Below the pieces are notes generated by a model that worked only from the letters and a program-made list of their open reading frames with translations, ran no database searches and was not told the DNA's origin. Source: Macrostomum lignano (taxonomy: Eukaryota). Taken from it: a stretch of 64,000 nucleotides of DNA. A program made the translations under genes and the position numbers. Positions 7,201 to 62,805 of the stretch are shown here, in pieces. Numbering within the stretch: position 1 is the first letter of the stretch; each line of letters opens with the position of its first letter. Where the stretch lies: assembly GCA_002269645.1 (NCBI GenBank), contig NIVC01003094.1, forward strand, positions 55,794 to 119,793. The letters run 5' to 3'.

Positions 7201-7850
7201 CCTTCGAAACCGCATTCAACTCATCATCAACCACAGGCTTCTCAACATCCAGAGCGGCTTTCGATCTGGACGCTGTGATCATCATTGACACCTGCGATCG
7301 AGACTCGCCAAAAGGCGGTGTCAATTGTTTTTGTAGATTTCTGCAAAGCTTTTGACTCCGTCAGCCCCGCGGGCGGCCATTGCCTGCAGCTCCTCCAGCA
7401 GCATGGAGTTCCTCAGCTGCTGTTTCAGGCGATCATGGACCTCTACAGCTCGTCCAAGGCTTTTTTCCAGACTGAACACGGCCCTACACCTGAATTTGCC
7501 ACCACCTCCGATCTGGGGTCCTGCAAGGTGACCCTATCACCGTTTCTATTCGTTATCCTGATTGACTACGTCATGCGGCTGGCTCTGCGCGACGAAGACG
7601 GCTATGAAGTGGTGCCTCGCCGCAGCTCCCGCTTTCCCTGTGTCAAGCTGACCTGCCTCGCCTTCGCCGACGACTTGGCGCTGACCTGCTGCAGCCCCGG
7701 AGCTGCGCAGAGGGCGGTGAGTCGGCTGGCTGACGAGGGGAAGCGCGTGGGGCTCCACATCAAATAGGCTCGTACAGCAAGACAGAGGTGCTGCATTTTG
7801 GCATTGCCAACTCTCCACCGCCGCTGCTTCTACCGGACGGCAACACCATC
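7201..7850 (+). mobile_element. RTE-type non-LTR retrotransposon reverse transcriptase fragment, frameshifted
   Basis: Motifs QSGFRSGR, FVDFCKAFDSVS, TLSPFLFVILIDYVMR, LAFADDLAL, GLHI..KTEV split over several frames. Confidence 0.9.
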
Positions 7851-8800
7851 AGACCTGAGTGTGGGCTCTGCCGCTGAGGATCGAGTAGGTCTACCAGCGG
7901 ATAAATATCGGGCCACCAAAGTGGGTTGATAAAATTCCCAAGGGGTTTAGAGGGCCCTTTTGGAGATGGGTGTCTTTACTGCAAATGTCGCAACTACTAC
8001 ACGGCTTGACTCCGGCCAACCGGCTGTAGACCTGCGGTTTTAGAGATGGGATCTTGCCAACGAGGTCGCACGTACTAGCATGAGAGCGAACACTTCTTAC
8101 AGCGTGAAATCTAGCTTAGCAACAATTCATGGACCTTTTAGACTACAGTATATAACAGTAGGGACGGCAAGCGGAAATTTTACGTTACTTAGAAAATCGA
8201 AGAGGAATTTTCCGGGGATTTAATCGCCTAAAGGACCGACAAGGCTAGTAGGGAAAACAGTCAGCTTTGTTGAAGGTCGTTTGCCAAACTCTTGAGCTTG
8301 AGATGCTCAGGGAACCCCGAAATTGTGAAGGCTCACCGGGTGGTTGAAGACTAAAAAATAAAGGCCCCACGGGGAATCAGAATGAGGAAATAAAATTAAG
8401 TTTCGTGCAGGTAAAGACTAAGAGAGATGCGAGAGAGTCACCACATCATGAATAAGTAAAGAAGGGATGCACCATGCCCGTGACAGAGACGCAAGCGCTG
8501 CTTACTAGTTCTATTGAGGCTCAGCATATGCGGGATTTTCAATTAAAGCCCAAGCTTAGCAGGTCGATATCGGATAGGGAATGGTATAAAGCAACCATAG
8601 ACCGCAGAGAACCGTAACAACCCGCAATCTCGTTCACTCTAGAGCCTAAGGCTACGCCCAGTGGTGAGTAAAGCCTCCCTGACCCTCCCTGCGGACTCAA
8701 CGGCAGCCCTAGGCAGCTTATTAACGCAGTATAGAGTTTTGAAGGTAAGACTGCCTAAATCAGCGCCCTGCAATTCATACATCGAGCTCATCGAAGCGGA

Positions 8801-13172: not shown

Positions 13173-16100
13173 ATGGCCGCCAGAAAGAGACAACCGACCC
13201 TTGGAAACCCACTAGGCGCTCGCATTGAGATGATGCCCAGGCAGCAGCAGCCGCCCAAGCCTCAGGCGTCACACTCGTCAGTAAGTTCGGCAGCGCCAGC
13301 CATCGCTACGGCTGCCGAGGTCGGCCAGGCTTCCATTGACAACATTGTGACCGCGGTGCGAATGTTCTCCGAGTCGCTGCTCACTAACAGAGTCTCCAAA
13401 GAGGCGCAGCAAGAAGTCAAGGCTCTGGCCGCGCAGATGGAGGTGAGATGGAGAGCTGAGATGGGGAGGTGAGATGGAGAAGAGAGAAGGGGAAGAGCGG
13501 GCAGTAGTATACGGGAAGGTGAGGATGAGTGAGAGGGTAGAGGGGGCGCTCTTAATAAGCAGTACCCGATTGAGAAGCTGAGAATAGACTGAGCAGGCGC
13601 AGCACCGACTGTCCCGCTACCTGGCAGGTGCTCATCGCCCGCCGCAGGCTGTCGGATAGCCGCTCCCGATCGCCCAACGCGGCGGAGACGCGACTGGCGC
13701 TGCGCAACTTGAAGCGTTTTCTAGAAAGGGAGGCGGCTGGGGAGCGACTGGCGGCACCGGGTGGCAAGCTGCAATGCGTGTCTTGCACGACCGACACTCT
13801 GGAGTCCAGCTGCGGCTCGCGGATACAGGTTTGGCTTCATCTTTGCTTTCAATAGCAAGCCCGCGTATCTGGGCCTTGTGAAGTCTAGGTTTGCGTGCCG
13901 AGAAAGGTGGCCTCTGTGTGGCTTTGTTTGCTCAATATATTTATTAGTCAATATTGGGGGGTGGGGGTAAAGCGATGCGTGATTGGTCGAGAATCGGTAA
14001 ACAAGTTTAGGCGAGAGGGTGAGTCATGAATAATGTGAGGCAGAGAGTGTAGCGTACGACCTACATCCTTCCCCAGGTGAATAAAAGTTCACATGAAACA
14101 GAGAATAAAATCAGAACACTTTAAATTAAAGCAAGCGAGAATTTAATCAGGGAGAGTAAATCAATAATTACGAATTCGAGTGCGCAAATAGTCGATAGCA
14201 GAGATTATAATAATTGTGACGAGTGTAATGTAAAATTCAGCGAAGCTTGAGCGCATTGAGCTGGGTTGTTAAGTTCTGCAGCAATGAATCGAATGCATTG
14301 AAAAAGTTTCCAACTAAATTTATAGGTACGACACGAGAGGGTTTACAGAAAGCAATCAATAGCCGGTGCAAATTATTCGCATTAATTGTATTTGCCCTGG
14401 CCACTCAGTCTGATGTTGCTCCGCGGCGCCCCTGTGAGGCCAGAGTTGCCAGCCCGATTCGCCCGCGTTCCGCTCCGCTCCAGTCCTGCCGGTCCCGCCG
14501 CTGCGTTGTCCGACCATCAGATAGTCGTAGGTCTCTCGTTGAGCTCATGGGGCTTGGCGCTCGCCGTTGGTGTCCCTGGAAGCAGGAGCTGCGTGACGGA
14601 GGCCCGATGCGCAGGATGCCCAGCTCTTCGCTCGTCTCCCTCCCAATGATCGTCGTTGCCGCTTCCCTCACGATGATGAAGTTGATGCTGGCGCTGATGT
14701 TGTAGACGGCGGTCCGCAGCCTGGCCATCCCGAGCGTGGCCAGTGGCTTCCTGGAGCCGAACGGGTGCACTCGACGCTTGCATGCCTGGAGATCCCTTGC
14801 CCTGCCTCCGATGGACCAGAAGGTCTTCAGGCTCATCAGGTTGCAGCCGGCGCCGCTGTCGATCAGAAGGTCGGCTTTGCGGCTCCTGATGGCCGCCCTG
14901 ACGCGCGGCAGGCGATTCCTTCGGGATTCAAGACAGAAAACCTCGCAGCTGCTCTCCAGGTCCTCTGGCTCGGCTCGCCCCTGGGCCGATACCACATGCA
15001 CTTTCTCCTCGAATCCCCCGGGGCTGGACAAGCAAGCCTTCGCCAGGTGTCCAATTTTGTTGCATTTGTGGCAGGTTTTCCCTCTTGCCAATTCGCACGT
15101 ACGGTGGCCCAGCTCTCCACACCGAATGCATTTGGCTTCCGATTGGGACTCCTGGCCGTGGCGTTTTCGCTGGATCGAGCTTATCGTCTCGTTGTTTCGT
15201 GCTTCGATGGCTGCTGACTGAAGTTCCGCCGCCTCGAAGGCTCTTGCTTGCTGCAGTGCGTCCTTGAGGCTGACGTTGCGAGTTTGCAGGAGTGTCCGCC
15301 GGAGCTGGGCGGATCTGCAGCCGGCCACTATTTGGTCACGGATGAGCAAGTCGCGCTGGGACCCGAAGTCGCAGCCATCGGCGGCTGCGTAGAGGCGCTG
15401 TGTCCAGGCGTCCAGTGACTCGCCAGTTTGCTGCGTGCAGTGCCGGAATTCGAACCTGACAAACACAGGGTTGTGTCTGTCGCTGTAGTGAGTCCTGAAT
15501 GCCTCGATCAGATCGTCAAGAGACTTTCCAGTTCGATTCAGCTCTTTAAATGTGTCCGCCAGCTGCTTGCCGCCTATGTAGAGAATTTCGCGCTGCTGGT
15601 CGGCACTTGTGATGCCACTGGCTGTGACAAACCTTTTGAAACGGCCGGACCACTCCTCCCACTTTGCGGAGAGGTTGTGCTGTTCTGCCTGTTCGTTAAA
15701 CTGCTCAGGCGGGGGTAGCTGCAGAGGCACAGACATTCTGACTGCTTGCGATGCCAATGTGAAGTCTAGGTTTGCGTGCCGAGAAAGGTGGCCTCTGTGT
15801 GGCTTTGTTTGCTCAATATATTTATTAGTCAATATTGGGGGGTGGGGGTAAAGCGATGCGTGATTGGTCGAGAATCGGTAAACAAGTTTAGGCGAGAGGG
15901 TGAGTCATGAATAATGTGAGGCAGAGAGTGTAGCGTACGACCTACAGGCCTGTGTGTACACATGTGCACACATCTATAGCTTCTGTTCCGCTTATTGTAG
16001 AGGGAAACAGTGTACGCGTATGTGGGTAAATAGCAAGCCAGAAAGTTCATAGCTATAAGAGCATAGCAGATAGATGGTAGATTAGAGTAGAATTAATGAG

Positions 16101-28204: not shown

Positions 28205-28400
28205 CAGTCATATTTTATTTGATTACACCCTATTGCGCGGCGTATCTGAAGGCTGCGTACGGCTTTACAGCTGGGTGAACTGAAGCAATGCAGAGTTACC
28301 ATGGTAGGTGTCTTGCTCAAGGATACAAATTGTTCCAGTGGGATCGGGAATCGAACCCCCGACCTTTCAAGTCGTGAGTCCGACGCTCTGACCACTAGAC
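28205..28400 (-). mobile_element. SINE family A copy (tRNA head + CORE-like domain), internally deleted
   Basis: Minus strand tctagtggtcagagcgtc..gaaaggtcgggggttcgattcc..ggaacaatttgtatccttgagcaagacac..ctgcattgcttcag..cacccagctgtaaa..acgcagccttcagat..ggtgtaatc; matches 38555-38846. Confidence 0.85.
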
Positions 28401-28748
28401 TTCAATCCTAGCTATGAAATTGGGTTTCATAGTCGCTATGGACCAAATTAAATGCAGCTGTGCCAGCCTTGCTACCATAGACAAAAGCTCCGTTACTTGG
28501 CAAACGAATCTTGAATTAAATTCAACGCGTGTAGGTCTAAATGGGCTGCAAAAAGCTATATTAAACACACTTAGTTATAGTTGTATCTAAAATTTCAGCT
28601 GGCTTGAGCATTCCTGTAAAAATGGTAGCCAAAGTCTGGAAAAATCTCTTGTAATATCTTCAATTATATAATTACTACTCCGATGTAGCTAAAAACTTAA
28701 TATTTAGCCTGACAGATCTTTTGAGAACTTCCAAAAACAATGAGTTCG

Positions 28749-32196: not shown

Positions 32197-32404
32197 TAGG
32201 GAATCCGGGTTCTACTCTGGGCGAATACTGCCGAACTGTAAGCAAAAATAGGTGATCAATTGAGACTCGAACTCGCGTTTCGCGATAGGTGACTCATGCG
32301 ACTTGTCACTTGGGAATTGGGGAGGGTTTTCATGGGAAGTTAGTTTTTTAGGGGGGGATTAGAGGAGATTCTGAAGGGGATCAAATTAGAGGAGATTTAT
32401 AAGG

Positions 32405-33215
32405 GGAATTCGAGTAGATTCTTAAGTGGAATTTGAGTAGATTCTTAAGTGGAATTAGAGGAGATTCTTAAGTGGAATTAGAGGAGATTCTTAAGTGGAA
32501 TTTGAGTAGATTCTTAAGTGGAATTAGAGTAGATTCTTAAGTGGAATTTGAGTAGATTCTTAAGTGGAATTTGAGTAGATTCTTAAGTGGAATTCGAGGA
32601 GATTCTTAAGTGGAATTAGAGGAGATTCTTAAGTGGAATTAGAGGAGATTCTTAAGTGGAATTAGAGGAGATTCTTAAGTGGAATTAGAGTGGATTCTTA
32701 AGTGGAATTAGAGGAGATTCTTAAGTGGAATTAGAGTGGATTCTTAAGTGGAATTAGAGGAGATTCTTAAGTGGAATTAGAGTGGATTCTTAAGTGGAAT
32801 TAGAGGAGATTCTTAAGTGGAATTAGAGTGGATTCTTAAGTGGAATTAGAGGAGATTCTTAAGTGGAATTAGAGTGGATTCTTAAGTGGAATTAGAGGAG
32901 ATTCTTAAGTGGAATTAGAGTGGATTCTTAAGTGGAATTAGAGTAGATTCTTAAGTGGAATTAGAGTAGATTCTTAAGTGGAATTAGAGTAGATTCTTAA
33001 GTGGAATTAGAGTAGATTCTTAAGTGGAATTAGAGGAGATTCTTAAGTGGAATTAGAGGAGATTCTTAAGTGGAATTAGAGTGGATTCTTAAGTGGAATT
33101 AGAGTAGATTCTTAAGTGGAATTAGAGTAGATTCTTAAGTGGAATTAGAGTAGATTCTTAAGTGGAATTAGAGTAGATTCTTAAGTGGAATTAGAGGAGA
33201 TTCTTAAGTGGAATT
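32405..33215. repeat. 23-bp minisatellite (GATTCTTAAGTGGAATTAGAGGA)
   Basis: Direct reading. Confidence 0.97.
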
Positions 33216-34029
33216 TGGGCAGATTTTTGATGGAATCAGAGGAGATTCTAAAAGTTTCTAAAAGATTCTAAAAGATTCTAATATTTAAAGGATATTCTTA
33301 AGTGGAATTTAAAGAGATACATAAATGGAATTGGAGAAGATTCTAAAAGGACATTTATTTAAGATTCATATAAGAAGTTCGAGATTCATAATCGTAATTG
33401 TAAGGAAATTAAGGAGATCAAGAGATGTTATACTATAGGCTAGCTAGAGTTTCATTTGCCACAGTCACACTTTATTAACTACTCAATACCGACTCTGAAA
33501 CTCTGCTTAAAAAGCAGGTAACGTTCTCATGTTTGGTTTGGCTTCAGAATTCTATTATAGAGAATTTTCCGTGGGCTGATCATAAACAGTTTTACTAATC
33601 TATCGTCAGGGAGCAGTCTTGATTGCACAGACAATTGATTTTTCAAATCCTCAGTCTCAACAGGTTGGACCTTTGAGATCTTGTTAAACCCGATAAAAGC
33701 ACATGTACAGACAATTATACTCTTATATAGGTGTTCCTTTTTATAGCCCAATTAGTTTAGATAAAACAAAACATAACAATCAAAGTCAAAGACGACATTA
33801 CAGAAAAAACCATGACGTATTTATTGATCTAGAGAAATGAGAGCATGGCATAAACCAGTTTTAAAAGCAAACAGCAAGGAAGACTAATTCATTATCAAGC
33901 TTATGCAGGCCTTCAATTTTGGCGTGAATGTAGATTACATAAGAGGAAATCTACAACAGAAGTTACGCGAAATGCATTGCTTCTGCAAATACGCATCCGA
34001 TTGCAATTTAAGCCGGTTTTAGACCGGTT

Positions 34030-34770
34030 AAGGGCGATTCTCAGGTGGGCTAGTGGCGTCAGGTGCGATTCTCGGGTGGGCTAGTGGCGTCAAGAGCGAT
34101 TCTCAGGTGGGCTAGTGGCGTCAAGAGCGATTCTCGGGTGGGCTAGTGGCGTCAAGAGCGATTCTCAGGTGGGCTAGTGGCGTCAAGAGCGATTCTCAGG
34201 TGGGCTAGTGGCGTCAAGAGCGATTCTCAGGTGGGCTAGTGGCGTCAAGAGCGATTCTCAGGTGGGCTAGTGGCGTCAAGAGCGATTCTCAGGTGGGCTA
34301 GTGGCGTCAAGAGCGATTCTCAGGTGGGCTAGTGGCGTCAAGAGCGATTCTCGGGTGGGCTAGTGGCGTCAAGAGCGATTCTCAGGTGGGCTAGTGGCGT
34401 CAAGAGCGATTCTCAGGTGGGCTAGTGGCGTCAAGAGCGATTCTCGGGTGGGCTAGTGGCGTCAAGAGCGATTCTCAGGTGGGCTAGTGGCGTCAAGAGC
34501 GATTCTTAGGTGGGCTAGTGGCGTCAAGAGCGATTCTCAGGTGGGCTAGTGGCGTCAAGAGCGATTCTCGGGTGGGCTAGTGGTGTCCGGGGCGATTCTT
34601 GACTGGGCTAGTGGTGTCCGGGGCGATTCTTGACTGGGCTAGTGGTGTCCGGGGCGATTCTTGACTGGGCTAGTGGCGTCAAGAGCGATTCTCAGGTGGG
34701 CTAGTGGCGTCAGGGGCGATTCTTGACTGGGCTAGTGGTGTCAGGGGCGATTCTTGGCTGGGCTAGTGGT
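34030..34770. repeat. 31-bp minisatellite (GATTCTCAGGTGGGCTAGTGGCGTCAAGAGC), related to the 29.8-30.6 kb array
   Basis: Direct reading; the last units convert to the GGGGCGATTCTTGACTGGGCT form. Confidence 0.97.
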
Positions 34771-34797: not shown

Positions 34798-37700
34798 TCA
34801 TGAATCGGAGACTTCCTTATCTCTGCAAATCCGCAGCAGCCGCACAGACGCATCGGCCGAACAGCTGGCCAGACAGTCAGGCTGTCCGGGTCGAAACGCC
34901 AGCTGGCGCACGGTGGCCGCGTGCACCGACGCCACAATGGCGATCGGCGCCAGGCGCCAACCACCAGCCGACGCCGAATCGGCGCCAGGCGCCAGCACAC
35001 TAATCAACGCTACGGCGCCAGATTCCAAACCGGCGGCGCAGCAAAATTCTGTTGCTGTTGCTGTAGGTCGAAAGCTCAGCGCCGTCACCGCGGCATCCAG
35101 CTCCAGCGAGGCCACTGGCTCCGGCTGCTCCACCTTCGTCTCAGTCGGCGCTGCCAACGCCGCCAACCAGACGGAGATTCGACGATCTCGCGAACCGGTG
35201 GCAAAGAATTTCTCTGCCTCATCATCTGCGGAGGTCGGCGGCCAGGCGCAGGACCATACGATGCGGGCGTGAGCGGCCCGCCTGGCGCTGAGCAGTTGGA
35301 TCTGACTGTCGGAGTCCTCGTCGTCCGGCAGTCGCCAGAGGCTCCAGCCGCGGTCGCGCGACACGGCTAGCAAACGTCTGCCAGACGAGTCGAATGCTAA
35401 TTGCGCCACAGTGAGGCCGTGATGCTCCAGCGTTTGGCGCCAGCTTGGACTCCAGTCTGGCGCCAAGCGCCAAACCAAAATGCCGGCCTGGTCGGGTTGG
35501 GTGGCCCGGCAAGCGGCCGCTAGGAGGCGTCGGCCCGGACAGGCGGCCAGCGATTGAACCTCGCCGCCGTGGCCGAACAGCTTGCGGACCTCCGGCCACA
35601 GGCCGCCATCGGCCAGAGCGTCTTCGCTTGGAGGCTCCTCCGGGTCGGCGGCGCCGCTTCCTCGCTGCCCCGACGTTGTCGACTGCATTGGCTGGTTTGA
35701 CAGGCCGAGCGACGGTACTTGGGCGTACTCGGGCTCGGCTGAATCCGCGGAGTCGGTTGGGTTCGGCGGCTCGCTGCGCTTCAGCTCGGGACAGCTAGGG
35801 TCGGCATTCGAGACCTGCCGTGCGTATTACTTATGGTCAAGTACTTTTCGAGTATTTTTTAGCTGAGAACTACCCGAGTAATACCCCAGGTTTAGCACTT
35901 CTGAGTATTCTGGCTTTGACTGAGCACTTTTCGAGCATTCTGGCTTTGACTGAGCACTTCTGAGTATTCTGGCTTTGACTGAGCACTTTTCGAGCATTCT
36001 GGCTTTGACTGAGCACTTCTGAGTATTCTGGCTTTGACTGAGCACTTCTCGAGTATTCTGGCTTTGACTGAGCACTTCTCGAGTATTCTGGCTTTGACTG
36101 AGCACTTCTGAGTATTCTGGCTTTGACTGAGCACTTCTCGAGTATTCTGGCTTTGACTGAGCACTTTTCGAGCATTCTGGCTTTGACTGAGCACTTCTCG
36201 AGCATTCTGGCTTTGACTGAGCACTTCTCGAGCATTCTGGCTTTGACTGAGCACTTTTCGAGCATTCTGGCTTTAACTGAGCACTTTTCGAGCATTCTGG
36301 CTTTGACTGAGCACTTCTCGAGCATTCTGGCTTTGACTGAGCACTTCTCGAGCATTCTGGCTTTGACTGAGCACTTTCTATATGTAAGTCAAAGCCCAAT
36401 TTAGATTTGGTTTGGCCTAAATATTTTCGATTAGGCGCACCTGACAATTGACTATCTAAACCTACCTGAGCCAGGACAGTCCGAAATCCATTGGGAGCGC
36501 GGAACAAGCGCACGGGTTTCTCCTCAGCCGCGCTGGCATAGACCCGGCAGCCGCTGTCGTCTAGAAAGGCCAGCGCGGTCATATCGTAACCGTGCACCTG
36601 CGGCCTGGCCAGCTGGCCCCATCGGCCGCCAAGCCTACGGCACGGCCCGTGCGCCCGGCAGGTTTGATCAGACGATGCGCTCAACAAATAAGCGCCGCCT
36701 GGCGACCAGGCTATCGACTCAACTGGCGCCGAATGCCCGCCGAAGCAGCCCAGTGGGCGCCAGCGAGTTGCCTCGCCAGTTTCGCCGCCTTCAACCCGAG
36801 TCCACAGGCTGAGCGCGCCGTTGAATCCGCAGGCTAACAATGATTGACCGCCAGCCGACAGCAAATCAGGCGGACTGGGCAGGCCAAGCAGGAAGCCAAG
36901 TTGATTGCCGCCGAGTGAGCCGACGCGGTCGCGCTCCAGCCAGAGTCCGCCAGCGTCTGCCTGCGGCTGCCAGACCACCAGGCTGCGGTCCATGCTGCTC
37001 GTTAGCAGCCGCAACTGGGGCTGACGATCGGCGCCATCATCATCATTGACAGAGAAGAATCTGACGGAGGTGACGGCCGAATCGTGGCCCTGCGCGAGTA
37101 GGCGTCAGTGAGACTTTAACTGAATGATCAGCTCAGTAGAGCTAAGCCCACTGATTAGCCCAGTAGAGCTAAGCCCGCTGATTAGCCCAGTAGAGCTAAG
37201 CCCGCTGATTAGCCCCCCCCAGTAGAGCTAAGCCCGCTGATTAGCCCAGTAGAGCTAAGCCCGCTGATTAGCCCAGTAGAGTTAAGCCCGCTGATTAGCC
37301 CCCCCCCAGTAGAGCTAAGCCCGCTGATTAGCCCAGTAGAGCTAAGCCCGCTGATTAGCCCAGCGGAAAGCACAATAAAAGCAGCAAGCCGCACACCTGC
37401 AGCACGGATTCCAGTCGAATTGCAATCCGCCCGAAGCCCACGCCAGCCTCAGAAGCCACCTGACGGTCAACATCGAGCAGACGAGCCGGCCGCTTGCCAT
37501 CGCTATAATTGTCGCCTTTGCCAGTCACCGCAGCGTTGTCATAATCTGGCAGACGCTCCAGCCGCCACAGCCTGACCGTGGAGTCCTGACTAGCCGTGGC
37601 AATCAGAGCACACCCCTCCTGGTCGGGCAATTCCACCCAGTCGATGTCGCGCACCCAGTCCTGGTGGCCGCCGCTGACGCGAATTACTCGCCGAATCGCC

Positions 37701-39380
37701 TCGCCACCAGCGGTTTCGGCCAGATTCAATGCGCCATCGTCGTCGCCGTAGGCCAGCAGCACCGAATTGTTGAACCGGATGAGCCGCAGGCCGAATGCGA
37801 ACCCGCCGCCGAGGCTGATGTCGTCAACACGAGACACTGACCAAGCCGGCTGCCATTGAAAATTAAACAATATTATTAATTAGGCACTCGCTTTGGCCAG
37901 CAGAGACGGAGCACACAAAGACTATTAGGGAACTTTAGGGAGAATCTTTACGCGCGATCATTGTCGAGGAGGAATTCCCGGGGAAATCTCTGGAAGCGAT
38001 TCCCAAGTGGAAACCATATTCTTAGGGGAAATTCCTAAAGGGAGAATTCTCTGACAAAGATTCCCGAGTGGAAGCCGGCAGTTAGGAAAGTCCGGGGTAA
38101 CTGCGTGAAAATTAATGAAAGTGCCTCCTTTTGGCAGAAGAAAGCCAAAATGCAAGAAATTTCCGGGGAAATTCCGGGAGAATCGCTGGAAGTGCAAGGG
38201 GTTTTTGGGGAGAGAAACTGACAGTTGAAAGTGACAGGAATTCCGTAGGAATCTTTCGGGTAATTGTCTTAAGATGAAAATCATGGGGGATAATTAAATG
38301 GGGAGTTTCATGTTGCGATTCTCATTATTGATAGGTAAAATCACGGTGGGGAATCTCGGAAGGAATTTGGGGGAGACTCTTTCAAAAGTGATTTCTTTTT
38401 GAGAGGAAGCTAAAAGCATAGAAAAGATTCTACCAGTGAAGTGCTCTATTCCCAGCTCTAAAGCTCCTATCCTGCATTGAATGTGTTACCTACCAATGAA
38501 AATACTCCAACAAGCAGAAGCTGAGGATTCTCAGCCAATAGGGAGCAGTAAAAAGTGGTTGTAGCCTAGTGACTAGAGCGTTGGGCTCACTGAAAGGTCG
38601 GGGGTTCGATTCTCAACCCACTCGGAACAATTTGTGTCCTTAAGTAAGACACTTAATTCTGCATTGCTTCAGTCACCCAGCTGTAAAATGGGTGCCAGCA
38701 TTAGCTGGGGTAATTGAGGCTGTGTGTGGCGACCCCTCAGTCCTTGGACTGAACAGCCTTACGCAGCCTTCAGATGCGCTGTATAATAGCTGCGGCTGAG
38801 CTGTCGGTTGCACATCTGCCCATTAAAGCAGGTGTAATCGAAAAAATCACAGTGAAATCATCAAATACATCGGACTCAAGTAAGCAACCCCAGTGATTGC
38901 ATTAAGATACTTCACCTGACTATTGACTAGCCGCCACAGCACCAGTCGATGATCCGAGCCGGCTGTGGCCACCAGAACCCCAGTCGGTTCGCCGTGCAGC
39001 ACTCCAGAGTCAACAGCCAGACCGTCAACATTCTCCAGTGTAGTCTGGCTGCCGTGCCCGCCGCTCAGACAGGCCAGACTGTCCAGCTGGCAGTCGGGCC
39101 CACCGGCAAGCCACAGTCTAGCGGTGCCATCAGCCGAGCAGGACAGGCCGAGGCGCCGCTGCTGATGGTCGGAGTCGGCCACCCAGCGCACCGCCGTCAC
39201 GCTCGCTGTGTGGCAGCCTCCGACCAGGCGAACCAGCCGACGCTCCGGACCGGGCGGGGCCAACCGGGCGAGGCCGACGCAGGATTGGACGGCGCATAGC
39301 AACAAGCCATTAGGACCCCAGTCGGCCGGCCGGGCGCACTGATTCAGATTGGCCGATATGTACTCCGAATATATTCGAGC
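34798..39380 (-). CDS. ELP2: Elongator complex protein 2 (WD40); exons 39380-38916, 37849-37397, 37089-36466, 35814-34798 (~852 codons, no genomic ATG)
   Basis: ADWGPNGLL, GHQDWVRDIDW, ATASQDSTVRLW, LLTSSMDRSLVVW, WGQLARPQVHGYDM, SAAEEKPVRLF, VPSLGLSN, LWPEVRKLFGHGGEV, AHARIVWSCAW, FATGSRD. All three introns are GT-AG phase 0; length fits Elp2. Confidence 0.95.
35895..36378. repeat. 30-bp (some 28-bp) minisatellite (CTGGCTTTGACTGAGCACTTCTCGAGCATT) in Elp2 intron 3
   Basis: Direct reading. Confidence 0.97.
37135..37362. repeat. 27-bp minisatellite (GCCCAGTAGAGCTAAGCCCGCTGATTA) in Elp2 intron 2
   Basis: Direct reading. Confidence 0.95.
38555..38846 (+). mobile_element. SINE family A copy (tRNA head + CORE-like domain + A-rich end) in Elp2 intron 1
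   Basis: gtagcctagtg..gggggttcgattc (A/B boxes), gtgtccttaagtaagacacttaa..cagctgtaaaatggg (resembles the CORE-SINE core), ends ggtgtaatcgaaaaaa. Confidence 0.85.
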
Positions 39381-39412
39381 CTGAATTGCGAATACAGAGC
39401 ATCATATAGATT

Positions 39413-40255
39413 GACTGGCTTGACTGTGTGAGATGGCACTAGCTTGACTGTGTGAGATGGCACTAGCTTGGCTGTGTGAGATGGCACTAGCTTGGCTGTG
39501 TGAGATGGCACTGGCTTGACTGTGTGAGATGGAACTGGCTTGACTGTGTGAGATGGAACTGGCTTGACTATGTGAGATGGCACTGGCTTGACTGTGTGAG
39601 ATGGAACTGGCTTGACTATGTGAGATGGCACTGGCTTGACTGTGTGAGATGGAACTGGCTTGACTATGTGAGATGGAGCTGGCTTGACTATGTGAGATGG
39701 AACTGGCTTGACTATGTGAGATGGCACTAGCTTGGCTGTGTGAGATGGCACTGGCTTGACTGTGTGAGATGGCACTAGCTTGGCTGTGTGAGATGGAACT
39801 GGCTTGGCTGTGTGAGATGGCACTGGCTTGACTGTGTGAGATGGAACTGGCTTGGCTGTGTGAGATGGCACTGGCTTGACTGTGTGAGATGGAACTGGCT
39901 TGACTATGTGAGATGATACTGGCTTGACTGTGTGAGATGGAACTGGCTTGACTATGTGAGATGGCACTAGCTTGGCTGTGTGAGATGGCACTGGCTTGAC
40001 TGTGTGAGATGGCACTGGCTTGACTGTGTGAGATGGCACTGGCTTGACTGTGTGAGATGGCACTGGCTTGACTGTGTGAGATGGCACTGGCTTGACTGTG
40101 TGAGATGGCACTGGCTGGATTGGGTGAGATGGAACTGGCTTGACTGTGTGAGATGGCACTGGCTTGACTGTGTGAGATGGCACTGGCTGGATTGGGTGAG
40201 ATGGCACTGGCTTGACTGTGTGAGATGGCACTGGCTGGATTGGGTGAGATGGCAG
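39413..40255. repeat. 24-bp minisatellite (TGTGAGATGGCACTGGCTTGACTG) immediately upstream of the Elp2 acceptor
   Basis: Direct reading. Confidence 0.97.
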
Positions 40256-40821
40256 TAACTTAATTATTGGTACTGTATGACAGAACTATTGGGATAAAGA
40301 TATTGCCAGCTATAACATTAGGACAGGAACTAAGGTGTCACGAATTACATAAAATAGCTAGGTTAAATAAGAATAAAGGAGACCTCAGCACTAATTTTCA
40401 GCCATAAAAAACTGTACATGGCTTCAGAAAAATTGCTATAGCACGAGATTACGCAAGCGCATTGGACTACACACACATTATTGCGACCAATTTATATCAA
40501 ATAACTCATATAAATTATGTATAAGTAAAAAGCTGAGCTAATTTAAAATTTGTAATAATATAAAACTTATTCAAATATAGTATCCCAATTGGAAATAATA
40601 CATCAATTTAGCTAATCAAGGCTACTCGTTAAGCAGTTGAACGCACGCGGTTATTAGGAAAAGGCTGAACAAAGCAAATTTGATTGCTTGTAACACTGGG
40701 AAAGCGTAACTTCAATAAAAATATGGCTATAAGTTGCTATTTGCTTTTGTATGTTTGCTGGAAGATAGCGACACTGTTTTTTTGAAGACTTTAATGATTC
40801 GGGAATAAAGGCTACAGATTG

Positions 40822-42270
40822 CGGCACTGATGCAGTATGGGACAGAGGATAGAATGGGCACTGATGCAGTATGGGACAGAGGATAGAATGGGCACTGATG
40901 CAGTATGGGACAGAGGATAGAATGGGCACTGATGCAGTATGGGACAGAGGATAGAATGGGCACTGATGCAGTATGGGACAGAGGATAGAATGGTCACTGA
41001 TGCAGTATGGGACAGAGGATAGAATGGTCACTGATGCAGTATGGGACAGAGGATAGAATGGTCACTGGGCCACAAGGGACAGGGGATAGAATGGTCACTG
41101 GACCACAAGGGACAGAGGATAGAATGGTCACTGGGGCATAGGGGACAGGGGATAGAATGGTCACTGATGCAGTATGGGACAGAGGATAGAATGGTCACTG
41201 ATGCAGTATGGGACAGAGGATAGAATGGTCACTGATGCAGTATGGGACAGAGGATAGAATGGTCACTGGGCCACAAGGGACAGGGGATAGAATGGTCACT
41301 GGACCACAAGGGACAGAGGATAGAATGGTCACTGGGGCATAGGGGACAGGGGATAGAATGGTCACTGATGCAGTATGGGACAGAGGATAGAATGGTCACT
41401 GATGCAGTATGGGACAGAGGATAGAATGGTCACTGATGCAGTATGGGACAGAGGATAGAATGGTCACTGATGCAGTATGGGACAGAGGATAGAATGGTCA
41501 CTGATGCAGTATGGGACAGAGGATAGAATGGTCACTGGGCCACAAGGGACAGGGGATAGAATGGTCACTGGACCACAAGGGACAGAGGATAGAATGGTCA
41601 CTGGGGCATAGGGGACAGGGGATAGAATGGTCACTGGGGCATAGGGGACAGGGGATAGAATGGTCACTGGGCCACAAGGGACAGAGGATAGAATGGTCAC
41701 TGGGGCATAGGGGACAGAGGATAGAATGGTCACTGGGGCACAGGGGCACAGGGGATAGAATGGTCACTGGGGCACAGGGGATAGAATGGTCACTGGGGCA
41801 CAGGGGACAGAGGATGGAATGGTCACTGGGGCACAGGGGCACAGGGGATAGAATAGTCACTGGGGCACAGGGGACAGAGGATGGAATGGTCACTGGGGCA
41901 TAGGGGACAGGGGATAGAATGGTCACTGGGCCACAGGGGATAGAGGATAAAATGGTCACTGGGGCACAGGGGCACAGGGGATAGAATGGTTACTGGGCCA
42001 CAAGGGACAGAGGATAGAATGGTTACTGGGCCACAAGGGACAGAGGATAGAATGGTTACTGGGCCACAAGGGACAGAGGATAGAATGGTTACTGGGCCAC
42101 AAGGGACAGAGGATAGAATGGTCACTGGGGCACAGGGGATAGAATGGTCACTGGGGCATAGGGGACAGGGGATAGAATGGTCACTGGGCCACAGGGGATA
42201 GAGGATAGAATGGTCACTGGGGCACAGGGGCACAGGGGATAGAATGGTTACTGGGCCACAAGGGACAGAG
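40822..42270. repeat. 33-34-bp minisatellite (GGGACAGAGGATAGAATGGTCACTGATGCAGTAT and variants) with a 201-bp higher-order duplication
   Basis: Direct reading; identical ORFs at 41041 and 41242. Confidence 0.97.
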
Positions 42271-42739
42271 GAGTCAGAGTCAATTTAGATCAGTTGTTAC
42301 AAAAACAAACAAAATACAACAGTAACAGTATAATGTTACTTAGCGCATTAATGGCTACTTCGCAACAAAAGCTGATAAAGAACATGTATAATGTGATTTA
42401 CAATACATAAATAAATATATAGAATACAGGGACAATCAGATTAAATATACCAGTCGCTAAATTGGGATTAGCAACAATAAATAGAAACTTGTGCAGCAAA
42501 ACAATGATTAGTTAGCCAACAGAGCAGATTACAATGATTAGCTAACACAATTCAAGCATTTGAAGCAATAAAGAAAATTATGGTGTCCATAACAATCCAA
42601 GTAGAAAATGATGATGATGCTCAGACACAGAAGAGACGAAAATCACGGGGAGATCCGGGGAGAGAGTGGATTCTCGAGAGGAGACTGAGACCATAAGGTA
42701 ATTCCGGGGTAGAATTTCTGTGGAATTTATCCAGAGAAG

Positions 42740-44606: not shown

Positions 44607-46157
44607 TCAGGACAGAGTGGAAACTCGAGTCTGCAGATCGCATATTTTGGCGAATATTTTAATAGCCGGACCCAGCCTAATGCCGACTTTGGTGAGCAAA
44701 TCCATGCGTCTAATTAGCATTAGAGAGATTCCGTCAACCTGTTCGTTAAGGAAACAGTCAGCTTCAGCTGGGTAGCCTTCGCACTTCAGCCAGTCTCGAA
44801 CCTCCTCAACTGTCCAGTCTAACACGCTGGGAGTCTCTTCAACACGCGTGCCGTCGCTGCAGCCGCCGCCGTTGGTCGCCTGGCCGTCTGCTGGCGCGTC
44901 AACAACCGGCGCCGCGGCGGCCTCGCAGGCCCCATTGAGTTGACCGGCGGCAGCAGTCCGACTGGCGACTGCTTCGGCGGCGATGTCGCCAACAATCATG
45001 TGACTTCCGTCCATTGACAGCTTGGCCGTGACAAAAACCGGCTGCTGTTGCTGCTGATGCTGAGCAGTGGCCTGCTGGTGAATCTGCTGAGTTGAAAATG
45101 CTGCGTGAACTATTTGCGTCGTAGCCTGAAGCGGCGGCTGCTGCTGCGGCGGCGCGGGAGCAATAGCAGTCGGCACCTGATGCTGCTGGCGCTGCTGCGA
45201 GTGCGACTGCAGACTCGCCAACGGTATCTGGCCGGACTTGGACACCACAACGGCTGTGGCAGGCAGCACGACGGGCCGTCCAGCAGCGGCGGCGGCCAGA
45301 GCGGCGGCGTGATGATGCTGATGATGATGGCCGTGCGGCATCAGTGGCATGCGCATGGGATCTCCCGGCTCCAGTTTGGGAAACACTGGCGCCAGGGGAC
45401 GCTTAACGGGCGGAGTCGGCGCCCCGTCTGGCCCGCTGCGTCGGCGCTTCCGACGATCGGCGGAGAGGCCGCCGCTGCCGACTGCGACTCCGACGCCGGC
45501 TACCCCGCCAGCTGGGGCGGGCGACGCGATGCCGCCGCAAGCCGGCGACTTGGCGGTCATCCGGTAGCTGACATAGTCGGCAATGGGCACACCGATGATG
45601 ATGCCGCGCTCCTCCATCCGCCGAATCGCCTGGCGAACAGTTTCCGCTCCGACGCTGTGCTTATTCAGCGTGAATCGGATTATCGTATCGAGATCGCGGC
45701 GCCGCTTCTGCCGCTGGCATCGGTCCATGGCTTCCACCACCCAGGCGCAGATCTGATCGTCTGCGCCGGACGCAACGCTCCCAACTGCGCCCGCGGCGGT
45801 GTCCGCATCGGCTGTTGAATCAGCGCCCGCAACAGCTTCTTCAGGCCCCGCGTCGGCAACAACTAGCGCCCCCGCTTCAGCTTCAAGTTCAGGTTCCGCT
45901 TCAGCAATAACTTCAGGTCTCGATTCAACTACAACTTCAGGTGTCGCCTCAGCAATAGCTTCAGGCCCCGCTTCAACTACAGCTAGAGCTGCTGCTTCAG
46001 CGACAACTTCAGGTCTGGCTTCGGCGACAATTTCAGGTCTGGCTTCAGTAATAACTTCAGATCCCACTCCGGCATCAGCAACGATAGGAGCAGCCGCGGC
46101 CGGCTCCCTGATAGCGCTTGACACCTCCGCCACAATTAGCCTCGCTTTGCCTCCCAA
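44607..46157 (-). CDS. SAMD1: SAMD1/atherin-like protein: winged-helix domain + C-terminal SAM domain; 5' end incomplete
   Basis: WVVEAMDRCQRQKRRRDLDTIIR..VSYR resembles the SAMD1/KAT6 WH motif (WILDTIDSLRSRKARPDLERI..SYR). VLDWTVEEV..FLNEQVDGISLML..GIRLGPAIKI resembles the SAMD1-type SAM. The track start is TTG, not ATG. Confidence 0.8.
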   Translation of the reverse strand: MGGKARLIVAEVSSAIREPAAAAPIVADAGVGSEVITEARPEIVAEARPEVVAEAAALAVVEAGPEAIAEATPEVVVESRPEVIAEAEPELEAEAGALVVADAGPEEAVAGADSTADADTAAGAVGSVASGADDQICAWVVEAMDRCQRQKRRRDLDTIIRFTLNKHSVGAETVRQAIRRMEERGIIIGVPIADYVSYRMTAKSPACGGIASPAPAGGVAGVGVAVGSGGLSADRRKRRRSGPDGAPTPPVKRPLAPVFPKLEPGDPMRMPLMPHGHHHQHHHAAALAAAAAGRPVVLPATAVVVSKSGQIPLASLQSHSQQRQQHQVPTAIAPAPPQQQPPLQATTQIVHAAFSTQQIHQQATAQHQQQQQPVFVTAKLSMDGSHMIVGDIAAEAVASRTAAAGQLNGACEAAAAPVVDAPADGQATNGGGCSDGTRVEETPSVLDWTVEEVRDWLKCEGYPAEADCFLNEQVDGISLMLIRRMDLLTKVGIRLGPAIKIFAKICDLQTRVSTLS

Positions 46158-48384
46158 TATGGGAGACAGGTGATAGTAATGGCGAGTGTCAGCCGAGGGG
46201 AAATGAAGGTGTAGGAAGAGTGGGAAGGGTGTAAATTTGCAGTAATTGGCTTGTCAGAACAGCGCAATGTACGTCATGAATGCATAAAATTTTTAGTTTA
46301 AAATTTAGCCGCCAAATCTTGAATGGAATGGTGCATAATTAATTTCAATTAATAGCATTACTAACAGTAGGTTGACAAGTCTTGCACAAACAATAAAGCA
46401 AATAATTTGATCGCATACAACTTTTTTGTAAAGTTTTGCATTTCAGTCTAATTTACAAAAGTAAGTATTTATTATTAAGTATAGGCTGTTTGTCCATTGG
46501 TTTTTAAAAATAACAAATAGTTTACAAAACAGTTAACAAAGAGTTATTATAGCAGGCTGCACATCTTGAACAAATAGTTGCTGCACATTTAAATGCCAAT
46601 ATTTTGGCACTGATGAATAGGCTAAAAAGCTATGCATCAAATGTAGCACTATAATCAACTAGTCAGTTCAAAGCCAAGAGCTGCTCTGTTCAACTGTATC
46701 TTTGATAACATATTTGCTTAATGTATGACCATACATATAAAAGTTAGCAATTCTAGAACATATTGCCAATACCTTAGTCTGATACTTAGTCCAATACTCA
46801 TTTTTTCTTATTTGTATGCTTTTAAGACTTAAGACTTAAGACTTAGAAACAAAAAGTACTAGTTTTTGGCTTTGCCATTCACTATTGGCAGTTCTAAGTA
46901 AGGTCATAGTTAGCATGTTGTTATTATCATATAAAAAATTAAACTCATTCCCAAAATAACAAATATACAGTTTCAACTAGTTAAAACTGCAGTCTAGTTC
47001 ATTTACATGTAGACTATGATAGGCTAGTATTTTGATGTACTTGTTTTGTTAACTTTTTTTCTGTTTTTAATACTATTATCTATTGACTATTTGGTCTATT
47101 CACAATAGGCCTATACTAAATCTCTTTTGTCTTATATACAGGGATAGCTCAATATTTGGGATAGAAAACTACAAAAGTTGGAAGCCATTCTAATTAATAA
47201 CTTAGTCCATAGAAAGCATTTCTTTGATAGTAGGTTTTACCTTATAGTCAATGAGTTTGTGTCAGTGGTAAAAATCTATCTAAGCAATACTTTTTAAGGA
47301 CTAAGTTATTAATAGATTGGCCTCCAACTTTTGTACATATTGTTTCCTATCCCTAGTTATTGAGTAGTCTCTATATATTTAAACATTTAGACTAGGAAAT
47401 CATAAAATGCAAAGCTAATATAATTATTACTATTGTTCCTATTTTTTATTCATCTTTTAAGTTTTGTCTTATATTATAATGAATATATCTAAAATTTTGA
47501 AAAATTCATGAGTCATCACTTTTATTTTTTTAATACATAAGACATGATATAGCCGATTGTAGGCCTACCATGGCTTAATGATAGAAAAATATAGATTTTT
47601 GCAAAATTCTATAACCAAATCTGAATATACAAAAATTCTAAATCTGAATCCAAACATCCAAATGTTTTTCCAAATATAGGCCAAAAGTTAAAGGTAGGGC
47701 CTAAAGTTCTAAACAATTCTATCTTTGATTTATATTATATCTATATAGTATCTAGCAAAACCAAATTCTTATATCCTATATACTAAAAATGGTCTGTCTG
47801 TGTCTATGTGATCGATTAGAGAAAAAATGGCTGGACCGATTTTGTTCGAACTTGCACTGTTCGATCAGAAATTTTCCCGTGACTGTACATGCATCGTGGC
47901 TAAGAAATTTCTCGATGCTAAAGGCATTAAATATTCGAAAAACATGCTTTTTTGCAAAGGTCAAGCAAACTTTTCGACTTGAAATGCATTGTAAGAATGC
48001 TAGAGAAAAAACTGACTGGTTGAATTCTGATTCTGAAATAGATTGCATCATAACTGAATTGTAACTCCGACTTGAATTGAAAATGCAGTGTGGAAGCGTA
48101 GCACCAGACTTGATTTAAATTGCGTAACCATATTGTTAACTGATACTGACTGACTGAGAAACTGATTATGTCATAACTGCTTCGTGTGATTTACTCTATG
48201 CTTGGATTTTAAAGTGTTGAATTATATAAGTGCAAAATTTGATGTTATCAAAACGATGAGAGCTAGCCTAGAGGTGAACAAACTGAACTGCTAAATGCAG
48301 CGACGATGGTTCGAATTTTCATAGAGTACAATTTTTTTAATTAAAACTTTTCAACGTCAGGAAAACTAAAAGACTTTTTAAAAA

Positions 48385-49147
48385 GAAGCATCATGTAAAA
48401 TATCAGAAAAAAGCGTCATATAAAAATCATAGATGCGTCATTTACAAAATCATAGAAGCGTCATGTAAAAAATCATAGAAGCGTCATGTAAACAATCATA
48501 GAAGCGTCATGTAAAAAATCATAGAAGCGTCATGTAAACAATCATAGAAGTGTCATGTAAAAAATCATAGAAGCGCCATGTAAACAATCATAGAAGCGTC
48601 ATGTAAACAATCATAGAAGCGTCATGTAAAAAATCATAGAAGCGTCATGTAAACAATCATAGAAGCGTCATGTAAACAATCATAGAAGCGTCATGTAAAC
48701 AATAATAGAAGCGTCATGTAAAAAATCATAGAAGCGTCATGTAAAAAATCATAGAAGCGTCATGTAAAAAATCATAGAAGCGCCATGTAAACAATCATAG
48801 AAGCGTCATGTAAACAATCATAGAAGCGTCATGTAAACAATCATAGAAGCGTCATGTAAAAAATCATAGAAGCGTCATGTAAAAAATCATAGAAGCGTCA
48901 TGTAAAAAATCATAGAAGCGTCATGTAAACAATCATAGAAGCGTCATGTAAAAAATCATAGAAGCGCCATGTAAACAATCATAGAAGCGTCATGTAAACA
49001 ATCATAGAAGCGTCATGTAAAAAATCATAGAAGCGCCATGTAAACAATCATAGAAGCGTCATGTAAAAATCATAGAAGCGTCATGTAAAAATCATAGAAG
49101 CGTCATGTAAACAATCATAGAAGCGTCATATAAAAATCATAGAAGCC
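48385..49147. repeat. 23-bp satellite (AATCATAGAAGCGTCATGTAAAC/A)
   Basis: Direct reading. Confidence 0.97.
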
Positions 49148-50064
49148 TAATTTAAAAACTAATGAAAGTGTCATTTAAAAATTAAGAAGCATCATGGTAC
49201 AATAAAAGAAGCATCATGTCAGACATGAAGGGTGTCATGTAAAAATTAAATGCAGCTATAATGCTGTGCTGGGGAGAAAAACTGAGACGTAAAGGCTCTC
49301 AGAGAATAACTGAGATTACGGGGGGGGGGGGGGTTGTTTCTGAGATGTCAAAGCAAAAGTCAGAAGCTACTTCAAAGTTCATGTACTTTACTCAATTTTT
49401 TATTGCATTCTTTGTTGGCTCGCCACGGGGGGCGCTGATAGAAGAAGAGTCATGTAAAAAATAAAAGTAGCACTACGTATACATAAAAGAAAAGTCATGT
49501 CGAAGTTAAAAGATTCATTTGGGAATTGCTACGATGTCAAAGCTTGGTGGAAATCGTTATAGTGCTGTGATTCTTAAAGAAGGAATCACTAAAATGTCAA
49601 GGCTTAGGGAGAAGAATTGCTGAGATTTCAAGGCTTTAGGTTGGGTTAAAGTTAGGTTTAGGTCAGGTGTGGGTTGAGGGTTATATTTTAGCGGGTTTCA
49701 AGGTTAACAGAATAACAGGGGATTTTTTAGATTAGAAGGTTTATGGGGGCCATTGCTGACATGTTAAGGCTTACGGGGGGAATAGCTGAGATGGCAAGGT
49801 TCACGGGGGTATAAATGAGATTTCAAGGCTAAAGTCAGAAGCTACATGTAGTTTATTGAAAACTTTTTATTACATTATTTGATGCCTCCTCTGGGGAGAG
49901 ATCGCTGATAGAAAAAGCGTAATGTAAAAAATAAAAGAAGCTTCATGTCGAAGTTAAAAGACTCATTTGGGAATCCCTACGATGTCGAGGCTTGCAGGGA
50001 ATCGCTATAATGCTGTAGTAGTGCTATAATGACTCTTAGAGAGAATTACTGAAATTTCAATGCT

Positions 50065-61583: not shown

Positions 61584-62805
61584 TCACTCCAGCATCTGCT
61601 GCTCCTTTCCCGGCTGGTCCATCAGCTCGATCGCCTCCTCCTGATTGGCCGGATGCTCGTGGATTTCCGGCCTCTGGACTGTACACTGCGGAGCTTCGTC
61701 GACGACAATTTCGTCGCCGTCGTCAGTCCGCCGGTCGCCAGCGCCTGTGACGAAGGTGACTCCGCCGTTTGCGTCGCCACCGCCACCAGCGCTGCTTCCT
61801 CCTCCTCCACCTCCTCCGCCGCCACCGCCACCGCCGCCCTTGCGATCAGCGCGACCACCTTGCCTCTCCGGACGGATTCTGAGCAGGCGAAACGCCTCCG
61901 CCTTGAAGGCTGGCCCAGCCAGGCAGTACAGCAAGAAATGGATTGCGTAATTAAGATTGAACATGCTGTAGCAGCATACCTGGCCCAGGTAAATCAGGTT
62001 CAGAACGATTTTCTTTTGCCTCATAATAGTGTCACGCTTCTCATTCAGCACCACGGTGAGGATGAGGTAGGGTAGCGAGGAAACCAGGTAGAAGATGCTG
62101 GTGCACAGAAGCATTTTCGTGAGGTTGCTGCCGTCCTTCCTCTTGTTCGGCGCTTTGTGCAAATTTTTCTCGCGCTTAGCTTTCACCCGATGCAGCGTGC
62201 GAATAATGAGCAGGTTGGCAATGAGCATGACTAGAAACGGTCCGACTGTTATTAGCGAAGGATCGACGTACTTCACGTACGCTTTCCTAATAAACTCGTC
62301 CTCAGACGAGCAGATTGTTTTGTTGTTGTCGTTTACCATTAGGGTCATGTACCATGGATGTCGGCAGTTGATAAGAGACACTAAACAGGCTATCAGTATG
62401 CACACTAGCTTGGAACGTTTAATCGTGCAAAACTGTCTGGCCTTGAAGGGGCACACGACCCAAACCATCCGATCGATGGTCACGGCCACGAGTACCCAGG
62501 CGCTGATCTGCGTAACAGAATAGTTCAGAAACAGCTGCAGCTTGCAGAGCACTATGTGCGTGTCTCGAAACTGCGTGCTACTGGTGAAGACAGCAGCCGC
62601 CAGGGCCTTTGTTGTCGGGCCGACCAGCAGTACCAGGATGTCAACGGCGGCCAGAACGGTGAAGTAGAAAGCCGTGCTAGTGTTTCGCAGGTTCGGCACG
62701 CGCAGCACCCTGATGGTGAGGATATTGCCGCCAATTCCAAACAGAGCGATTAGACCGGCCAGGCTCATCTCCAGGGCGACCAGGCCTTCGTAGATTTTTG
62801 CTATT
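61584..62805 (-). CDS. Class A (rhodopsin-like) GPCR, FMRFamide/peptide-receptor-like; main coding exon, upstream exon not identified
   Basis: GIGGNILTIRVL (TM1), YFTVLAAVDILVL (TM2), CKLQLF..SAWVLVAVTIDRM (TM3), KYVDPSLITVGPF (TM5), LLCTSIFYLVSSLPY (TM6), NLNYAIHFLLYCLAG (TM7); acceptor ttttag at 62806. Confidence 0.92.

Follow-up and report, generated by a model that had tools for sequence, protein, structure and literature searches.

How does a gene begin translation when its genomic sequence offers no start codon ahead of the conserved part of its protein? The question is raised by a gene on the minus strand of a 64,000-nucleotide (nt) stretch of the Macrostomum lignano contig NIVC01003094.1 (assembly GCA_002269645.1; hereafter the window), which sequence similarity identifies as the gene for Elongator complex protein 2 (Elp2). 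A window position plus 55793 gives the position in the NIVC01003094.1 record; the window ends with the contig, at 119793, and window position 39380, the first base of the proposed first exon, is record position 95173, minus strand. The best explanation, which we hold to be probable, is that the initiator AUG of Elp2 is donated by the spliced leader (SL), a sequence that would be joined to the mRNA by trans-splicing.

The Elp2 gene and its 5′ end

The Elp2 model lies on the minus strand and comprises four exons joined across GT-AG introns; it encodes 852 amino acids, with no frameshift across 2559 coding nt. The exons are the following (a slash marks splice boundaries throughout).

38916 to 39380, minus strand: exon 1, 155 codons, starting ARIYSEYISANLNQCARPADWGPNG, with no Met codon and with the donor CAG/gtgaag
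37397 to 37849, minus strand: exon 2, where the UniRef model A0A1I8GP11 exactly starts
36466 to 37089, minus strand: exon 3, the most conserved part of Elp2
34798 to 35814, minus strand: exon 4, TGA stop included

The model matched mouse Elp2 (8avg_B) with E=2.6e-92 over residues 20-786, human ELP2 (8ptx_B) with E=5.9e-90 and yeast Elp2 (5m2n_A) with E=1.1e-56. Pfam matches to WD40 were obtained in every exon, and the full-length similarity to orthologues is that of a two-propeller WD40 protein. Exon 1, when searched alone against proteins, was too divergent to match Elp2. An exhaustive HMMER search with the full model returned a 100%-identical M. lignano protein, whose cluster holds UniRef A0A1I8GP11 (Elongator complex protein 2, Macrostomum lignano) together with GenBank PAA53402.1, PAA73940.1 and PAA84063.1, all of them genome-derived models. 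PAA53402.1 equals residues 6-852 of our model without a mismatch, and the UniProt entry A0A1I8GP11, which begins at exon 2, is 155 residues short. A word-indexed protein search had missed the 100%-identical M. lignano entries for three queries (exon 1, the middle exon and PUS10, another gene of the window) that the exhaustive search found, and a negative from the word-indexed search does not amount to absence from the collection. The best non-self matches to Elp2 were metagenomic contigs of microbial eukaryotes, which were judged irrelevant.

On the minus strand, the boundary at issue reads gtattcgcaattcag/GCT CGA ATA TAT; its AG occupies 39382-39381, and exon 1 follows from 39380 as GCTCGAATATATTCGGAG. 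From 39460 downward the strand runs ...ccagtcaatctatATGATGctctgtattcgcaattcag/GCT CGA ATA TAT TCG GAG TAC ATA TCG GCC AAT CTG AAT CAG TGC GCC CGG CCG GCC GAC TGG GGT CCT AAT GGC, and in the frame of the GCT it translates as TGA-C-S-V-F-A-I-Q-A-R-I-Y-S-E-Y-I-S-A-N-L-N-Q-C-A-R-P-A-D-W-G-P-N-G. The following features lie in this region.

39400 to 39405, minus strand: ATGATG (39405-39403 and 39402-39400), out of frame (+1) with Elp2, overlapping the TGA and opening a 31-codon open reading frame (ORF)
39402 to 39404, minus strand: in-frame TGA, eight codons upstream of the first exon codon; present here (locus L006) and in the Elp2 copy L005, deleted in the copy L007
39381 to 39382, minus strand: AG of the proposed SL trans-splice acceptor, ttcgcaattcag/G, phase 0; the paralogue model PAA84063.1 starts on the next base
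39363 to 39364, minus strand: second phase-0 AG, tcggag/TAC, which with an SL AUG would give M-YISANLN...; the exon from 39362 is TACATATCGG
39339 to 39340, minus strand: third phase-0 AG, gaatcag/TGC, which with an SL AUG would give M-CARPADWG...; the exon from 39338 is TGCGCCCGG

The phase-0 AG at 39382-39381 is the sole AG between the in-frame stop and 39365 (37 nt after the stop), and a 32-nt AG-free tract lies directly upstream of it. No in-frame ATG is found between the TGA at 39404-39402 and the conserved DWGxNG motif; the two ATGs of 39405-39400 stand 22 and 25 nt from the acceptor. The 852-residue model has its first Met at residue 339, and therefore no internal start could give a functional two-propeller Elp2.

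Alignment of the Elp2 N-termini indicates how much is missing. The Met of Capitella falls one position before the first Ala of the window protein, that of Pinctada, Glossina and Pyrocoelia is level with the Ala itself, the Gryllus protein is one residue longer than that of the window, and those of Branchiostoma, Bacillus and Bemisia are three residues longer. The DWGxNG motif is conserved across the aligned full-length orthologues, and the numbering of yeast Elp2 is offset from our model by exactly 1. It follows from the alignment that one codon, at most a few, is missing, and that it must be ATG. A preliminary description of the window had reported a frame open from 39380 after a phase-0 acceptor, a TGA in frame just upstream and no ATG before the conserved ADWGPNG, and had proposed that one added Met gives the usual Elp2 N-terminal length. 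These statements hold, the Capitella Met aligning at the missing position; the TGA lies 2-4 nt outside the range that the description gave, and the two out-of-frame ATGs were missed. The flatworm origin that the description assumed is confirmed by the 100% identity of the product to A0A1I8GP11 and PAA53402.1.

Three copies of Elp2 and their annotated starts

M. lignano is a hidden polyploid, and Elp2 is found at three loci, namely in the window (L006), on NIVC01000390.1 (L005) and on NIVC01000985.1 (L007). The Mlig_3_7 annotation is guided by RNA sequencing (RNA-seq), with 5′ gene boundaries taken from reads that were trimmed of the SL before mapping (TBONE). All three GenBank Elp2 products are flagged as partial at the 5′ end, with neither a Met nor an upstream exon. 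PAA84063.1 (L005) begins ARIYSEY, its gene start being the base right after the AG; PAA73940.1 (L007) begins RIYSEY, 3 nt downstream of the AG-adjacent start, and PAA53402.1 (window) begins EYISAN, 15 nt downstream of it. As in the window, no genomic in-frame AUG precedes the conserved N-terminus in L005 and L007. In L007 (7960-7997, compared with window 39410-39381) a 5-nt deletion upstream of the acceptor removes one ATG and the in-frame TGA, and the Elp2 frame is open for 210 codons upstream, through the minisatellite that precedes the gene, without an ATG. The annotated L007 model still starts at the acceptor despite this open frame, and therefore the annotated transcript does not run upstream. 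Within exon 1 the copies differ by substitutions only, the one indel lying upstream of the AG; this contrast marks the stretch upstream of the AG as non-coding.

The comparison of copies also bears on a simpler explanation, that the gene only seems to lack a start codon: a 1-nt assembly indel might have displaced the ATGATG at 39405-39400, or the locus might be a decaying duplicate in the hidden polyploid. The ATGATG does stand 22-25 nt upstream, a single nt out of frame, and the products of L005 and L007 are truncated or frameshifted. However, the ATG that survives in all three independently assembled copies lies 22 nt from the acceptor and out of frame in each, and this common spacing all but rules out an assembly frameshift. 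The absence of frameshifts in the 2559 coding nt sets a 95% bound of at most 2.6% for an indel in the 22-nt stretch. Moreover, the window gene is intact over 852 amino acids and aligns with residues 20-786 of mouse Elp2, and the extension MM-xSVFAIQ- that a corrected frame would add has no counterpart in orthologues. We regard an artefact or defect of this kind as extremely unlikely.

The window Elp2 is the only intact copy of the three. In L005 (gene from locus position 8001, gene range 8.2 kb) the 523-residue product reads into intron 3, and in L007 (gene likewise from locus position 8001) the 610-residue product is frameshifted after about residue 562. These defects may reflect the decay of duplicates in the hidden polyploid, or local assembly errors. 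We also considered reading the locus-tag suffix '.g2' as 'second gene of a transcriptional unit'; this was dropped, as the prefix recurs on two contigs and is the name of a similarity cluster.

The spliced leader and rival sources of the start codon

M. lignano has a single SL, CGGTCTCTTACTGCGAAGACTCAATTTATTGCATG, which ends in ATG and is followed by GTAAG; its trans-acceptor motif is [T/C]TNCAG and its donor consensus GT[G/A]AG (PMC8629364). The 3′ end of the SL, CTCAATTTATTGCATG, closes with ...TTGCATG, such that the AUG stands directly before the GU. Trans-spliced genes make up 30% of M. lignano genes, or 38.8% in another count, with conserved genes enriched among them, and the Macrostomum authors regard the final ATG of the SL as a start codon. 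All flatworm SLs end in AUG, and the use of the SL AUG as initiator is documented (PMC12582326). For Schistosoma mansoni, the account of Cheng 2006 given in PMC9851317 has 28% of trans-spliced mRNAs carrying the SL AUG in frame, and more than 40 complementary DNAs that require it. The preliminary description had likewise held that flatworm SLs end in an AUG able to initiate translation, in accord with PMC12582326 and with Cheng 2006 as relayed in PMC9851317. An SL RNA gene was not found in the window by a search with the SL 3′ 16-mer at 3 mismatches, with an ATG-GT...Sm-site pattern or with Rfam at gathering and E-value thresholds.

The region upstream of exon 1 has the following features.

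39414 to 40254, no strand assigned: minisatellite, 24 bp x 35 copies, 841 bp, the bulk of the proposed outron, with no ATG on the gene strand (described earlier as 840 bp)
40255 to 40824, minus strand: unique AT-rich region (33% GC) upstream of the minisatellite, likely promoter and outron start
40478 to 40473, minus strand: cis-exon candidate gcaataATGTGT/gtgtag, the only plausible candidate in 40255 to 40824

In the proposed sequence of events, the 5′ part of the Elp2 pre-mRNA, from about 40.8 kb to 39381, would be an outron composed of the AT-rich region (40255-40824) and the 24-bp minisatellite. The outron would be discarded and the 35-nt SL (...AAUUUAUUGCAUG) joined to the acceptor at 39382-39381, giving an SL-GCTCGAATA junction. 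The phase-0 acceptor would put the SL AUG directly before GCU CGA AUA, and AUG-GCU-CGA would be read as the start of M-A-R-I-Y-S-E-Y. The SL would supply the cap, the whole 5′ untranslated region and the initiator codon of the Elp2 mRNA, and the splice at 39380 would also remove the out-of-frame ATGATG at 39405-39400. We infer both the joining of the SL at 39380 and the start of ribosomes on its AUG from the sequence and the annotation.

This explanation is favored because exon 1 has no in-frame ATG, the first Met of the protein is residue 339 and a TGA stands eight codons upstream; because the sole AG after that stop is in phase 0, behind 32 AG-free nt; and because one added Met restores the N-terminus of the orthologues. 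It is favored further because the M. lignano SL ends in ATG in an animal that trans-splices 30-39% of its genes, conserved ones disproportionately, because three RNA-seq-guided models are 5′-partial with neither upstream exon nor Met, because the indel between copies marks the stretch upstream of the AG as non-coding, and because the first exon codon, GCT, puts Ala at residue 2 with a G at +4, as is typical of true N-termini. The acceptor, ATTCAG, matches five of the six positions of the M. lignano trans-acceptor motif.

Several observations weigh against it. The acceptor has A, and not T/C, at position -6 of the motif, and the U at -3 of the SL AUG makes for a weak Kozak context. The support from the annotation models is indirect, two of the three starting a few bases past the AG and not on it. 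In addition, a candidate cis exon, ATGTGT/gtgtag, is found at 40478, about 1.1 kb upstream; its donor is like that of Elp2 intron 2 (gtgtgc), and with it the minisatellite would become intronic, like those of Elp2 introns 2 and 3.

The last observation leads to a rival explanation, in which a tiny cis-spliced 5′ exon, ending at ATG or one or two codons beyond it and missed by the annotation, is joined at 39380, with the minisatellite as first intron. Intron-poor genomes often have introns immediately behind the ATG, and every other Elp2 intron bears repeats (minisatellites in introns 2 and 3, a short interspersed element, SINE, in intron 1). An upstream scan gave 18 candidates of the form ATG(+0-12 codons)/GT. 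The best of them, the one at 40478, has A at -3 and would yield MC-ARIY across an intron of about 1.09 kb, near the mean of about 1.1 kb for M. lignano introns. In contrast, none of the 18 has the species donor consensus GT[G/A]AG, none of the three RNA-seq-guided models includes such an exon, all being 5′-partial and one starting exactly at the AG boundary, and Ala as the first genomic codon suits protein position 2 better than position 3. Unspliced upstream transcripts would have extended the 5′-partial ORFs and a cis-spliced ATG exon would have completed them, which argues against the cis exon. The candidate is conserved between the copies, but this is uninformative because the region upstream of the minisatellite is ~97% identical between the Elp2 copies; the next upstream ATG lies about 0.9, 1.3 and 2.0 kb away in the three, the length of the minisatellite varying. 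Considering these points together, we think a cis exon unlikely. The preliminary description had proposed that translation of the gene depends on trans-splicing and had named a cis-spliced upstream ATG exon as the finding that would overturn this; the proposal gains support from the absence of such an exon in all three models. The description also took the gene to be essential, which is an assumption; Elp2 is not essential in yeast.

We also considered an mRNA without trans-splicing that would be translated from a non-AUG codon lying within exon 1 or immediately ahead of it. In-frame near-cognate codons are present, namely ATT at 39386, ATA at 39374 and CTG at 39347. However, ATT and ATA are poor initiators, and the ATT lies upstream of the annotated transcript starts, the annotated transcripts stopping short of the region upstream of the AG. 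A CTG start would drop 11 residues that align with orthologues, and an unspliced leader would offer the out-of-frame ATGATG first. A non-AUG start is thus, in our assessment, very unlikely.

The next two AGs within exon 1 (39364-39363 and 39340-39339) are both in phase 0, for which the chance is ~1 in 9, and an SL joined at either would leave Elp2 in frame with a shortened N-terminus. Every one of the three AGs within the exon's first 45 nt is in phase 0; this would keep trans-splice slippage in frame and hints at selection on trans-splice phase.

Other genes of the window and relation to known systems

A similar arrangement is seen in PUS10 (minus strand, 23594-20477, first coding exon 23594-23102), where no genomic in-frame ATG precedes the conserved N-terminal CxxC zinc motif. 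A TAA near 23660 bounds the open PUS10 frame upstream, and an AG-free tract of 66 nt terminates in ctgcagag/GGC, phase 0. The SL AUG at this acceptor would give M-GTAAELQSRQAPYLCWRC, inside the 10-21-residue range of orthologue N-termini, and PUS10 is a second candidate for an SL-AUG-dependent gene. A neighbor-joining tree of PUS10 failed to place the organism, ten N-terminal variants of our PUS10 model were absent from the sequence collection, and exact look-ups with ORFs of the window gave no match. Elp2 and PUS10 are two of six same-strand genes in the 64-kb window, and both lack a genomic start codon before the conserved N-terminus. Three neighboring genes have an ATG of their own, each with an acceptor-like site just upstream; at these sites the SL AUG would produce a 7-codon upstream ORF (uORF) in the RNase PH gene, a short overlapping uORF in DUSP and an in-frame extension in the gene at 26652. 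The annotated DUSP model (191 amino acids) starts, within 29790-29779, at a TGC, one codon before the ATG at 29781 and 4 nt past the acceptor cccgcag/CGGCTGCATGG. The start of this exon contains TGCATG, identical to the last six bases of the SL; were an SL AUG joined there, the resulting 8-codon uORF would overlap the real start. In the unnamed gene with an ATG near 26652, the acceptor caactacag/TGC (in 26700-26650) fits the trans-acceptor motif exactly (CTACAG) and is in frame; the SL AUG would add 17 N-terminal residues.

Elsewhere in the window, a SAMD1-like gene (winged-helix and SAM domains; 44610-46253, minus) shares the strand of Elp2 and lies 5.2 kb upstream of it, and further genes encode a rhodopsin-family G-protein-coupled receptor and leucine-rich repeat proteins (61584-62768 minus, 8759-10208 plus). 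A retrotransposon-like ORF (14408-15904, minus) has two CCHC zinc knuckles and a DSG protease motif, with no Pfam match at E<=0.001, and a separate stretch at 7279-7764 (plus) resembles a reverse-transcriptase fragment.

Repeats are prominent. A different minisatellite is found in each of Elp2 introns 2 and 3 and in most of the intergenic spacers, and 21 tandem-repeat arrays with units of 4-134 bp (e.g. 32384-33249, 34030-34769, 40825-42272, 48384-49196) make up 17.6% of the window, compared with about 15% tandem repeats in the published M. lignano genome. The lengths of tandem arrays vary between paralogous loci. The window has long GC-rich exons and introns of about 1 kb, again in agreement with the published genome, and its codon preference agrees with that of the M. 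lignano-optimised set in 13 of 18 amino acids (16 of 18 with ties), which is supportive and not decisive. Comparison with the M. lignano promoter fragments of PMC5730564 gave no shared repeats. A tRNA-derived SINE is present in Elp2 intron 1 (38557-38760) and at 28264-28405, the two copies being about 80% identical; ARAGORN and Rfam called no tRNA at either. The SINE core, tgtgtccttaagtaagacacttaa...cacccagctgtaaaatgggt, resembles a CORE/MIR-type domain, and families with such domains are so widespread as to be of no taxonomic use.

The closest known system is SL-AUG initiation in flatworms, described for S. mansoni (Cheng, Cohen, Ndegwa and Davis 2006, J Biol Chem 281:733) and discussed as 'slORFs' in PMC9851317. 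In both, as far as that later account conveys the Schistosoma work, the SL has a terminal AUG, the acceptor is in phase with the ORF and the recipient has no AUG of its own before conserved sequence, with the SL giving, or here predicted to give, the cap, 5′ untranslated region and start codon. Unlike the S. mansoni case as relayed there, ours concerns the free-living M. lignano and the gene Elp2, with junction and initiation predicted from sequence and annotation. SL trans-splicing in M. lignano itself (Wasik 2015; Wudarski 2017, PMC5730564; Ustyantsev and Berezikov 2021, PMC8629364) involves the same organism and the same SL. Elp2 fits the trans-spliced genes of this animal in its acceptor TTCAG, its being a conserved housekeeping gene and the 5′ end of one copy on the acceptor. 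The M. lignano SL studies (PMC5730564, PMC8629364) neither counted nor listed SL-AUG-dependent genes, and our literature search found no paper naming Elp2 in the context of an SL AUG and no supplementary tables listing ELP2 or PUS10. Start-codon-adjacent cis introns, as in yeast ribosomal protein genes, share with Elp2 a genome-encoded ORF that starts after a phase-0 acceptor with the ATG elsewhere. In the yeast genes, however, the ATG is in a cis exon of the same pre-mRNA, whereas no such exon is annotated or convincingly predictable for Elp2.

Elp2 in M. lignano would be a new instance of a mechanism described in 2006 and no new kind of mechanism; it opens no new conceptual question. It is conceivable, though we lean against it, that SL-AUG dependence is common among conserved housekeeping genes of M. 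lignano and hidden because annotations label such genes 'partial'. Genes like Elp2 are deposited as partial or truncated, and annotation pipelines for organisms whose SL carries an AUG should append the SL ATG before ORFs are called; the design of M. lignano transgenes should likewise allow for start codons supplied by the SL. If the proposed initiation is correct, Elp2, a conserved tRNA-modification factor, would be untranslatable in M. lignano without trans-splicing, and expression of the Elongator complex would be tied to the supply of the SL ribonucleoprotein.

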